From: Octopus sinensis
Lineage: Eukaryota
Length of the DNA: 64,000 nt
Assembly (NCBI RefSeq): GCF_006345805.1
Contig: NC_043009.1
Location: 61,566,001 to 61,630,000, forward strand
Reading direction: 5' to 3'
A program made the position numbers and the translations under genes. Shown here piece after piece: positions 9,876-16,200 of the stretch. Each line of letters starts with the position of its first letter. Position 1 is the first letter of the stretch. The notes under the pieces were generated by a model that saw nothing but the letters and a program-made list of their open reading frames with translations, made no database searches and was not told where the DNA came from.

Positions 9876-10130
9876 TTAAAAATAAAGATACCGGTTCCTC
9901 TCTCTCTCTCTCTCTCTCTCTCTCCCTCCCTCCTCTGTCTCTCCTCTCTCCCTCTCTCTCTGATCTCTGCATCCCATTTGTTCTTTAATAATTATTAAGT
10001 AAAATCATTATTGCTGTTTTAAAGCACTTTTAATCATTTTGAGATATTGCAAGATTGTTTTTGTTTGCACAGTCGAAATGTTTGCATTGAATTCTAAGTT
10101 ATGTCTTTCTCTTTTCCCTTCCACTTGTAG

Positions 10131-10283
10131 GTTTTTTGTGTTGCTATTATTGCCATAGCTGTTCCTGTGTAAGCAGCAGGATCATTGTACAGTATGACAA
10201 GTGAAGACAGTCCAATAATGACTGCCCCACCACCTCAGCCACCCCCAGTTTATCCACAGGACAATATGAAAATGTTAGAAACT
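10131..10283 (+). CDS. SMARCA4: Coding exon 1: 63 nt 5'UTR, then ATG 10194, [30 protein letters not shown]
   Basis: Pyrimidine tract plus AG at 10129-30; in-frame TAA at 10170-72 upstream of the ATG; donor GTAAGT at 10284. The phase-0 join gives [10 protein letters not shown]|AINSMEEKG, matching fly QENLHALQRAIDSMEEKG. The acceptor implies a non-coding exon further upstream that I could not locate. Confidence 0.85.
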
Positions 10284-13200: not shown

Positions 13201-16200
13201 TACAAAATTTTAACAGCATTATTAAGACTTTACTTACTAGCTACTAAGTTTGTTGAAATAGTAGTTACTACAAACTTTGTAAGAGATATATTAGTATTTA
13301 GTATCTAATACGTTGCACAATTCAACACATGCCAGGTCATTGACTCCTTTTACTAGAGATCAATTTGTTAGCATTTGGACTGCCCACCCCACCTACATTT
13401 TTCCTAGAGACATTGACCTAAGCTGGCTATCAGCTACCACTATCACTAGGCTAGAAGAACCTTCAAAGATTGTACCTAAGTGCTCTTCTGCCTTTAAACT
13501 AATTTATAAAAAAAAAAAGAGAGAGAATTTATATGCTAATTAGATTTTTATTGTTTTTAATGATATTGCAATTGAAAGGATAAATGAGTTTATTGTATGT
13601 TTTTTACCTGAGGAAGAGGAGGGAAGCTAGCTGTTTTCAAGTATAAATAAAAGATATAAAATATTCAATATCACCCTGCGCAAGATTGCCCCTGGTTCAA
13701 TGATACAAGCTCCCTGTTTTAAAATATCATTTTAATTTCTGTTCCTAACACTAGCTTAAAAATGACTGAGCTATTTTACTAAATTTTTCATTATTTTCAA
13801 AATAAATTGAAATAAAGATAGGCGCAGGAGTGGCTGTGTGGTAAAAAACTTGCTTACCAACCACATGGTTCCGGGTTCAGTCCCACTGCGTGGCATCTTG
13901 GGCAAGTGTCTTCTGCTATAGCCCCGGGCCGACCAATGCCTTGTGAGTGGATTTGGTAGACGGAAACTGAAAGAAGCCTGTCGTATATATGTACATATAT
14001 ATATAAGTGTGTGTGTATATGTTTGTTTGTCTGTGTTTGTCCCCCTAGCATTGCTTGACAACCGATGGTGGTGTGTTTACGTCCCCATCACTTAGCGGTT
14101 CGGCAAAAGAGACCGATAGAATAAGTACTGGGCTTACAAAGAGTAAGTCCCGGGGTCGAATTGCTCGACTAAAGCCGGTGCTCCAGCATGGCCACAGTCA
14201 AATGACTGAAACAAGTAAAAGAGTAAGAGTAAAGATGGTGAGTTTCAGCAGAAATATGGTAACAAAAGAATTAATGAATTTGCTATTTATTTTATAGACT
14301 GTCCATGTATCTGCAAAGTAGTAAATATATTACAAGGGCTTTGTATAGGAGAGTAGTGAGTAATTTTCAGAAATAAAAGACAATGTTAATCTCTGTGAAA
14401 TTTGAGTTTGTTGCAACCTAATAGACTCTTTCATCATTATCATCATCGTTTAACGTCCGTTTTCCATGCTAGCATGGGTTGGATGGTTCGACCGGGGTCT
14501 GGGTAGCCAGGAGGCTGCACCAGGCTCCAGTCTGATCTGGCAGTGTTTCTACAGCTGGATGCCCTTCCTAACGCCAACTACTCCGTGAGTGTAGTGGGTG
14601 CGTTTTACGTGCCAGGGGAGGCTGGCAGTGGCCACGATCGGTTGGAGCTTTTTACGTGCCACCAGTACAGAAGCCAGTCAAGGCAGCGCTGGCACCGGCC
14701 ACGTTCGGATGGTGCTTTTTACATGCCACCGGCACAGGTATCACCAATTTCCATTTGATATGTATTTTGATATTGATGTACTTGAATCAATAGGTCTCCT
14801 CAAGCACAGCAGGTCATGTGCCACCAGCACAGAAGCCAGTCAAGGCAGCGCTGGCATCGGCCACGTTCAGATGGTGCTTTTTACGTGCCACCAGCACAGA
14901 AGCCAGTCAAGGCAGCGCTGGCATCGGCCACGTTCGGATGGTGCTTTTTACGTGTCACCGGCACAGAAGCCAGTCAAGGCAGCGCTGGCATCGGCCACGT
15001 TCAGATGGTGCTTTTTACGTGCCACCAGCACCGAAGCCAGTCAAGGCAGTGCTGGCATCGGCCACGTTCAGATGGTGCTTTTTACGTGCCACCAGCACAG
15101 AAGCCAGTCAAGGCAGCGCTGGCATCGGCCACGTTCAGATGGTGCTTTTTACGTGCCACCGGCACCGAAGCCAGTCAAGGCAGTGCTGGCATCGGCCACG
15201 TTCAGATGGTGCTTTTTACGTGCCAACGGCACAGGTATCACAACTACAATTTCCATTTGATATTTATTTTGATGTTGATGTACTTGACTCGATAGGTCTC
15301 CTCAAGCACAGCAGGTCACCCTACAATATGTTATCCTGCCCCCCCCCCAGCTCCTTTGCCCTTCCTGTTGCTCATTTTTCAATATTTGATGTTTATGTCT
15401 TATGCTTTGTGTCTTCTTGTACAGGCTATTAATTCAATGGAAGAGAAAGGCATGCAGGATGACCCTCGATACTCTCACCTAGTGATAATTGCAAATCGAA
15501 CCAAGGGAGTGGTGAGTGGAGGAGGTAATGGCACTGCAAGTGGTCCTGGATCACAGGGTTCGACAGGCCCTCCTAATATGGGTGGCCCAGGCCAAGGAAT
15601 GGGTATGAGTGGACCGGGCATGACACCCGGAAACAATATGAATGGACCAAATATGAACAACTCAAACAGCAATATGTCGAACCCTAATATGGCCGGACCA
15701 AATGGTGGAAACATGAACAGTGGAATGGGGGGTAATCCTTCATCTGGTACCGGTGTAGGTGCTGCTGGATCAGGTAACCCACCCAATGTCTATGCCAATA
15801 TGCAAGGACCTAATTCATGTGGTCCACCTGGGATGAATGGGCCGGCCATGAACAATATGTCCGGACCTAATAATGCTATGGTTGCAAACATGAATTCCAA
15901 TATGAATGGTCCACCCGGACCCCCAAATTCCTCTGGAGCTAATCAGCAAGCTATTGAAACCAGTGAACAAGGACCACAAGGTAAGTGTTTATTTTTATAT
16001 AACACACACACACACACACATATATGTTCGCCATGTTGGACCACTGAACTCAACATGTTTTTTTTTTTCATTCTCTCCCTATTTGTTTCCTCATATTCCT
16101 TTCTGTTGAAGAGTGTAGGCTCGTAATGTAAAAGATTTTTCCATTTTTCCCAACCGTCAAACTAATGCACTTGCTTGTTGTTCCTATACCTGTCTTTGTT

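Follow-up and report, generated by a model that had tools for sequence, protein, structure and literature searches.

The brahma gene of Octopus sinensis carries a second copy of its start-codon exon in the intron that follows this exon, which raises the question of whether the copy takes part in the expression of the gene or is a remnant of an old duplication. The gene lies in a stretch of 64,000 nucleotides (nt) of the assembly ASM634580v1 (RefSeq GCF_006345805.1, contig NC_043009.1, positions 61,566,001 to 61,630,000), referred to here as the window, and the initial annotation of this stretch proposed that the copy might act as a decoy, poison or terminal exon. We call the functional exon A and the copy B, and all coordinates are those of the window. 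Judging from its splice signals and from comparisons of orthologous loci, we assign a probability of about 0.75 to the reading that B has no function and is what remains (a pseudo-exon) of an old, local and probably tandem duplication of the exon, evolving as ordinary intron DNA.

The plus strand of the window contains nearly the entire gene. Pfam domains were identified in the exon open reading frames on one strand and in the order QLQ, SNF2-related/SNF2-type helicase, Helicase_C, SnAC and bromodomain, which is the order that identifies the gene as brahma / SMARCA2-4 (SNF2L2). The N-terminus predicted from the window is 100% identical to XP_029644241.1, annotated as "probable global transcription activator SNF2L2", and exact mapping of this protein yielded 32 coding exons from position 10194 to the end of the window. 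All 31 donors mapped in this manner were GT, in a mapping that admitted only GT or GC. Exon A consists of 63 nt of 5' untranslated region (UTR) and the first 30 codons, and is joined in phase 0 to the second coding exon at 15425 to encode the N-terminus of XP_029644241.1. Its sequence is the same in O. vulgaris, with no differences.

The duplicated start-codon exon sits in the intron that follows A, as had been described. Exon 10131-10283 and its repeat at 13056-13208 were aligned without gaps and differed at 12 of 153 positions. The 90 coding nt accounted for 8 of these differences, 7 of which were non-synonymous (S3T, A11T, P16L, M25V, K26Q, E29Q and T30N) and 1 synonymous (P21), and the motifs GAATTCTAA, TTTGTTGAAAT and AACTTTG were found at corresponding offsets beside both copies, in agreement with the initial annotation. 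The homologous block extends over positions 10026-10347 and 12942-13279, with 78% identity over 340 columns (blastn E = 2e-67), and the aligned pairs of the upstream flanks alone (10026-10130 and 12942-13055) were about 79% identical. B is thus a same-strand intronic segment similar to the neighbouring exon, that is, a tandem exon duplicate. Flanking intron was copied along with the exon: the homology covers about 105 nt in front of it, acceptor included, as well as 30 nt of distal sequence behind it. This indicates a duplication at the DNA level and not a retrocopy. A search of the O. sinensis genome for processed retrocopies with a spliced exon-1/exon-2 junction, of either the A or the B kind, yielded none, and A and B were the sole two copies across the 2,719,151,902 bases in 13,516 contigs.

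We examined the splice signals of the two copies using position weight matrices (PWMs) trained on the 31 donors and 32 acceptors of the gene itself, for which the median scores were 9.1 and 9.6 bits, respectively. The acceptor of B (ccacttgtAG) is unbroken and scored 10.6 bits, which exceeds the median of the true acceptors and is the highest score among the 334 AG dinucleotides in the 5.1-kb intron. The sequence at the expected donor position, AATTTTAAC, scored -9.2, compared with the true-donor median of 9.1, and is TT in all three Octopus species examined. The description of B as a pseudo-exon with a strong acceptor and without a donor was accurate in this respect. Given a divergence of 6-11% per site along the B lineage, an intact AG is expected with a probability of 0.79-0.88, so that survival of the acceptor is anticipated by chance at this low divergence and carries no weight.

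The donor itself was said to have changed from GT to TT, which is correct for the literal dinucleotide but not as a point change, since about 40 nt after B are unrelated to the start of the intron after A. The first 35-41 nt contained 24 matches, compared with 22.2 +/- 1.8 for shuffled sequences, and thus no excess, whereas the following 30 nt (13250-13279) contained 25 matches, compared with 16.8 +/- 1.6 in shuffled sequences and a value that was not reached in any of 1000 shuffles. The donor region was swapped as a block before the species split, rather than being lost by a single G>T substitution. The next GT dinucleotides are weak, located after positions 13116 (3.0 bits), 13335 (4.5), 13594 (5.4) and 13942 (6.9, inside a SINE, a short interspersed nuclear element, specific to O. 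sinensis), such that the best GT within 380 nt of B scored at most 4.5 bits and no donor of normal strength is present there. The potential weak cryptic donor at 13278 (TTT/GTAAGA; the slash marks the exon-intron boundary) fell under the threshold of 2 bits for listing donors and was estimated by hand to about 0.7 bits, as compared to 0.6 for the weakest true donor of the gene. In a functional pair of alternative exons, each copy should be equipped with both a 3' and a 5' splice site that can be used, and this is not the case for B.

For the comparison with other species, we located the orthologous loci in O. vulgaris (GCA_951406725.2), O. bimaculoides (GCA_001194135.2) and Argonauta hians via the annotated proteins. 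O. vulgaris and O. bimaculoides each have B in the orthologous place, and neither the acceptor nor the sequence AAT/TTTAAC at the end of the exon differs from that of O. sinensis. The duplication thereby predates the split of O. bimaculoides from O. vulgaris and O. sinensis, which has been dated to about 34 million years ago (PMC10700109), and is at least about 34 million years old. A rough clock, based on 5-6 of 153 exon changes in the B lineage before the split, a divergence of 22% in the upstream flank and a neutral rate of 3.1% per lineage since the split, placed the duplication at 2.0-3.6 times the age of that split, an estimate of the order of magnitude only. The published dates are clock-like only poorly: the intron divergence of O. 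sinensis and O. vulgaris is 2.5% for 2.5 million years, while that of O. sinensis and O. bimaculoides is 6.2% for 34 million years. Exon A alone was found over the whole intron of Argonauta hians, an intron that is unalignable to Octopus and thus uninformative on the timing. The three B copies represent one lineage with shared derived sites, so gene conversion has not acted on them after the species diverged.

Two small indels were observed in the upstream flank of B, both consistent with an unconstrained intron. Around 12997/12998, O. sinensis is without 12 nt (TTTCTTTGGCTG) that are present in O. vulgaris and O. bimaculoides, and O. bimaculoides (at about 11880 of its locus) is without 24 nt that are present in the other two species.

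To quantify the rate of change, we counted substitutions in B and its surroundings. The O. sinensis and O. bimaculoides copies differed at 7 of 153 sites (4.6%) and by a frameshifting indel of 2 nt, compared with 48 of 770 sites (6.2%) in the flanking intron (Fisher p=0.57), and the corresponding numbers for O. sinensis and O. vulgaris were 3 of 153 in B and 20 of 795 in the flanks. For comparison, the next real coding exon has diverged by only 0.72% between O. sinensis and O. bimaculoides. In addition to the frameshift, the O. bimaculoides copy contains a TAG codon. It has also retained the upstream in-frame TAA, so that the loss of this stop (TAA to TTA), as initially noted for B, applies to O. 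sinensis and O. vulgaris but not to O. bimaculoides. The acceptor, B and its flanks showed no conservation above the intron background. B does not evolve more slowly than the intron and its reading frame has not been kept, contrary to what is expected under purifying selection.

These patterns can be put together as a simple series of events. A block of about 0.33 kb with the brahma/SNF2L2 start-codon exon, its acceptor and some flanking intron was copied before the O. bimaculoides split. Early on, the first 40 nt or so behind B, among them the 5' splice site, were replaced, giving rise to the state common to the three species. If exons in such a long intron are recognised as acceptor-donor pairs, B could not be defined as an internal exon. 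B has since drifted at the neutral intron rate, transposable elements have moved the copies 2.9 kb apart, and about half of the amino-acid differences between A and B arose in the functional exon A. Some observations weigh against this reading. Two independent RefSeq annotation runs hold models (isoforms X2 and X5, see below) that are consistent with a junction from B to the next exon and for which real RNA support is possible, the neutral-rate test has modest power with only 153 nt, and the B copies of O. sinensis and O. vulgaris are open in frame and no longer contain the upstream stop, as in a used exon, although this is easily explained by chance.

Table 1. Features of the duplicated start-codon exon of brahma/SNF2L2 and its surroundings in the window.
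Feature	Position	Strand	Details
Upstream intron flank of exon A, in duplicated block	10026-10130	+	Branch-point-like GAATTCTAA at 10091-10099; acceptor ccacttgtAG, PWM score 8.5 bits
Exon A, functional first coding exon of brahma/SNF2L2	10131-10283	+	5' UTR part 10131-10193; ATG 10194; 30 codons; donor ACT/GTAAGT
Last six codons of exon A	10266-10283	+	Derived 10266 G>A, 10269 C>A, 10278 C>G, 10282 A>C (V25M, Q26K, Q29E, N30T)
Donor and proximal intron after exon A	10284-10347	+	Recognisable counterpart after B only for 10319-10347/8
Spacer between the blocks	10348-12941	.	Repeats by window self-comparison and genome copy numbers
SINE-like elements in spacer	10356-10672, 10673-10877+11458-11729, 12029-12360	.	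Genome copy numbers
Mariner-like transposase fragment	10878-11457	.	Genome copy numbers
Old interspersed repeats in spacer	11730-11958, 12361-12704	.	Genome copy numbers
Upstream flank of copy B	12942-13055	+	Intact polypyrimidine tract and acceptor ccacttgtAG; 10.6 bits; kept in O. vulgaris and O. bimaculoides
Copy B, probable pseudo-exon copy of exon A	13056-13208	+	Duplicated ATG 13119; frame open from 13056 to TAA 13245-13247
Replaced or scrambled segment at expected 5' splice site	13209-13249	+	AAT/TTTAACAGC...; donor PWM score -9.2; same sequence in three Octopus species
TT-AG "intron" implied by RefSeq X2	13209-15424	+	Split 13208/15425
Distal downstream flank of copy B	13250-13279	+	Homologous to 10319-10348 (TTGTTGAAAT...AACTTTG); ends TTT/GTAAGA
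Second coding exon of brahma	15425-15980	+	O. sinensis-O. bimaculoides divergence 4/556 = 0.72%

We also determined the direction of the differences between A and B. Exon A of O. bimaculoides and Argonauta ends in QDNVQMLQN/GTAAGT, which is the spelling of B in all three Octopus species, and GTGCAAATGTTACAAAAT is present at the exon end both in exon A of these two outgroups and in all three B copies. By this comparison, the residues M25, K26, E29 and T30 are assigned as derived changes of the functional exon A in the lineage of O. sinensis and O. vulgaris, corresponding to four changes in the last 18 nt, all of which are non-synonymous. The 7:1 ratio of non-synonymous to synonymous differences had been taken as a sign of relaxed decay of B. 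This interpretation fails because four of the seven non-synonymous changes are derived in exon A. The coding changes of B itself are three non-synonymous and one synonymous: A11T, P16L and the synonymous change in P21 are common to the B copies, while S3T is present in the O. sinensis copy only. In O. bimaculoides the region of codon 16 in B has been further altered by the indel.

The concentration of replacements at the end of exon A is unusual for this protein. Only 15 aligned residues differ between O. sinensis and O. bimaculoides over the whole protein, which is otherwise about 99% identical between the species, and 4 of these are located in residues 25-30 (permutation P = 7.5e-5 for a window of 6 residues). 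A search for a gene-conversion donor of the derived 3' end of exon A found the 24-mer to be unique in the genome at up to 1 mismatch, so that no other locus served as its template. The four clustered replacements might reflect selection or local relaxation, or might have arisen together in one multi-nucleotide event.

A second cluster of replacements between O. sinensis and O. bimaculoides was observed in a segment with the sequence QASECLYLR (49360-49386), located at the end of the exon at 49129-49386, in which four changes (E>D, L>F, L>V and R>K) fall in six residues. Some annotated isoforms include the segment and others lack it, and its placement at the end of the exon points to an alternative donor. 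It looks weakly constrained.

Among the alternatives to a relic, we consider it unlikely that the acceptor of B, paired with either a cryptic donor of low strength or a polyadenylation site in the intron, constitutes a poison, decoy or terminal exon selected to tune the dosage of brahma. Such a role would draw on the best AG of the intron, and exons ending at 13116, 13278 or 13335 would be 61, 223 and 280 nt in size, all with a remainder of 1 when divided by 3. The two longer ones contain the TAA at 13245-13247, and all three would create a premature stop after exon A. The polyadenylation signals (AATAAA) reported at 13646 and 13801 were confirmed and an additional one was identified at 13811. 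These candidate donors within 280 nt scored only 0.7-4.5 bits, however, against the median of 9.1 for true donors, and AATAAA occurs once per about 1016 nt in the window. The signals at 13646 and 13801 are not conserved in O. bimaculoides, where they read AGTAAA and AATTAA, and only the one at 13811 has been kept. Regulated poison exons are typically conserved, whereas the acceptor, B and its flanks were not more conserved than the intron background and the survival of the AG is as expected by chance. In a transcript spliced from exon A to this acceptor, the frame would be open through all of B in O. sinensis and O. vulgaris, in which the TAA has been lost, and would stop after 13 codons in O. 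bimaculoides. The sequence comparisons thus provided no positive evidence for the proposed role as decoy, poison or terminal exon: B evolves like an intron and is followed by no normal donor within about 380 nt.

It is also doubtful that B was once a working twin of A, either redundant or used in a mutually exclusive manner, that was kept similar by selection or gene conversion and became a relic after its donor was destroyed. Identity to A is higher in the exon part (92-94%) than on either side of it (78% for the upstream flank), and, had B possessed a donor at birth, its use in place of A would have left the protein unchanged. However, the divergence of 7.8% in the exon and 22% in the upstream flank fits a model in which A was frozen and B was neutral, under which the contrast is non-significant (P=0.11-0.21), so that there is no need to invoke gene conversion or past constraint, and both were rejected as explanations of the high exon similarity on these statistical grounds. 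The shared derived sites of the B lineage argue against conversion since the split, and the donor is absent in every species available.

A further reading, which we regard as improbable, is that B is a genuine alternative first coding exon that is spliced from a non-GT 5' splice site to 15425 and provides a second N-terminus with the ancestral ending VQMLQN, as opposed to MKMLET in A. RefSeq represents isoform X2 of O. sinensis in this way: XP_036364322.1, which belongs to the 90%-identity cluster of the protein, opens with the 30 residues of B, directly followed by AINSMEEKG. The sole split of the genomic sequence that yields the resulting ...VQMLQN/AINSMEEKG is 13208/15425. Similarly, isoform X5 of O. 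bimaculoides (XP_014787480.1) is 1604 amino acids long, which is 26 less than the full 1630, and begins with MLQNAINS, which is what is expected from the first in-frame ATG in a transcript of B plus the next exon in that species; probably X5 also runs from B via the TT-AG intron. B is moreover 153 nt in size with an open frame in O. sinensis and O. vulgaris, where the upstream TAA has been lost.

Several lines of evidence nevertheless suggest that X2 and X5 are most likely modelling artefacts that stem from the near-identity of A and B. The TT-AG intron, for which no other split is possible, falls outside the three accepted classes of introns (GT-AG, GC-AG and AT-AC), which make up 99.4% of the introns in animal annotations, and minor non-canonical pairs are often regarded as artefacts (PMC7072748); in this gene, 31 of 31 donors were GT. 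B evolves at the rate of the intron, and its O. bimaculoides version is disrupted by a frameshift and a TAG codon. The annotation of O. vulgaris, which is supported by Iso-Seq data (PMC10700109), contains three isoforms, and every one of them starts with exon A. Simple causes of an erroneous model can also be envisaged: the O. bimaculoides protein matches B of O. sinensis at 27 of 30 residues and A at 26 of 30, and in O. bimaculoides A and B do not differ in their last 27 nt, which is plausibly enough to mislead the placement of junctions or the assembly of transcripts from k-mers. Searches of protein collections with the 63-amino-acid frame of B and with the 215-amino-acid N-terminus of B plus exon 2 retrieved no transcript- or genome-derived fragments from other species. 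As for the assertion that the arrangement had not been described for brahma genes, we found no paper on octopus together with SNF2L2, but RefSeq isoform X2 was already built on B.

Two other routes to a transcript with B were considered and rejected. If the AG/GT at 13055/13056 is read as a recursive splice site, the regenerated donor is GTGTTT, which was judged by eye to be far from the consensus. A-to-I editing does not produce a GU donor because both of the relevant bases are T, and editing of the preceding A shifts the frame and does not yield the X2 protein.

We think it highly improbable that the copies in O. sinensis and O. vulgaris are in the process of becoming a pair of alternative start exons, in which A would contribute the new MKMLET and B would contribute VQMLQN with its open frame and lost stop, via the TT-AG or another unconventional route. 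Finally, an assembly artefact in the form of an uncollapsed haplotype or a mis-join, a concern of a general kind for a fragmented assembly of 13,516 scaffolds, can be dismissed because B is present at the orthologous place in three independently sequenced species, the copies have diverged by 8% in the exon and by more than 20% in the flanks, and different transposable elements separate A from B.

Returning to the relic of a tandem duplication, the 2.6-kb spacer provides information about the original arrangement of the copies. Only about 200 nt of it (12741-12941) are single-copy, and the rest consists of repeats or microsatellites. Some of the insertions are recent: O. bimaculoides has neither the SINE (10356-10672) nor the mariner fragment (10878-11457). 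Since the spacer is almost entirely composed of repeats and some insertions are recent, A and B would originally have been adjacent, or nearly so. The duplication was thus probably local and tandem, presumably in a head-to-tail orientation, although the duplication junction is no longer identifiable. The intron between the first two coding exons has accumulated transposable-element insertions of differing ages, including a SINE-like element of about 415 bp at 13812-14229 that is missing from both O. vulgaris and O. bimaculoides and is specific to O. sinensis and very recent. No tRNA was called by ARAGORN in the SINE-like elements. The O. bimaculoides locus contains two gaps of N, at 10796-10958 (163 bases) and 13810-13855 (46 bases), one between A and B and one in the next intron, which are bordered by CT and TA microsatellites; the distance of about 2.0 kb between A and B in this species is therefore only approximate.

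A tandem array with a period of about 67 nt was observed at 14431-15318, just upstream of the second coding exon, with spurious open frames of up to 221 amino acids. Its alignment with the O. vulgaris locus is broken up into numerous staggered segments, pointing to a difference in copy number between O. sinensis and O. vulgaris.

The biological weight of B is small, given that such relics are common in animal genes and that B behaves as neutral DNA. Its practical consequences lie elsewhere. It flags a probable error in RefSeq, where SNF2L2 isoform X2 of O. sinensis and probably X5 of O. bimaculoides depend on a TT-AG intron, and it illustrates how exon duplication can lead astray not only an annotation pipeline but also the counting of substitutions, since changes in the functional exon are booked as decay of the copy if no outgroup is included. 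The comparison also exposed a short, fast-evolving patch at the end of the first coding exon of brahma, with four replacements in six codons in O. sinensis and O. vulgaris. Should RNA show that B is used, it would represent a rare documented case of splicing at a non-GT site, and a core chromatin remodeller would be in the course of gaining an alternative N-terminus.

Tandem exon duplicates were estimated by Letunic, Copley & Bork (2002), as cited in PMC9013439, to be present in about 10% of animal genes, including exons that contain UTRs, with thousands of copies unannotated in neighbouring introns. The octopus locus resembles the known tandem exon duplications (Letunic 2002; Ivanov & Pervouchine 2022, PMC9013439) in that a same-strand intronic segment is homologous to the exon and its flanking intron and was, by all appearances, originally adjacent to it. 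It differs in that the copy holds the start codon, the whole donor region is gone and the segment is neutral in three genomes, as expected for a relic rather than for a candidate new alternative exon. The annotated minor non-canonical introns (PMC7072748) offer another parallel, as the TT-AG intron of X2 belongs to the class of 0.58% "other" introns that are frequently treated as artefactual; what sets it apart is that a specific cause can be proposed, namely competition between two almost identical exon copies for the alignment of proteins or reads.

Functional exon pairs provide the clearest contrast. Mutually exclusive exons, such as U2AF1 exons 3 and Ab (PMC5224494) and the Dscam clusters, likewise have a shared origin, both octopus copies measure 153 nt in O. 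sinensis as well as in O. vulgaris, and X1 and X2 in RefSeq formally resemble such a pair, but B lacks a 5' splice site and purifying selection and is frameshifted in O. bimaculoides. The variable first exons of UGT1A each have their own promoter (PMC9013439) and are spliced to common exons, which would imply a normal donor, while B has the acceptor of an internal-exon copy and no donor. Pseudoexons, decoy sites and poison exons coupled to nonsense-mediated decay share with B the strong orphan 3' splice site in a long intron and the premature stop upon inclusion; in comparison with poison exons, B has neither a partner donor of normal strength nor conservation above background. With no donor of normal strength and no conservation above background, B does not match functional mutually exclusive exons and is unlikely to be a poison exon, and its place among these systems is that of an ordinary relic of tandem exon duplication.

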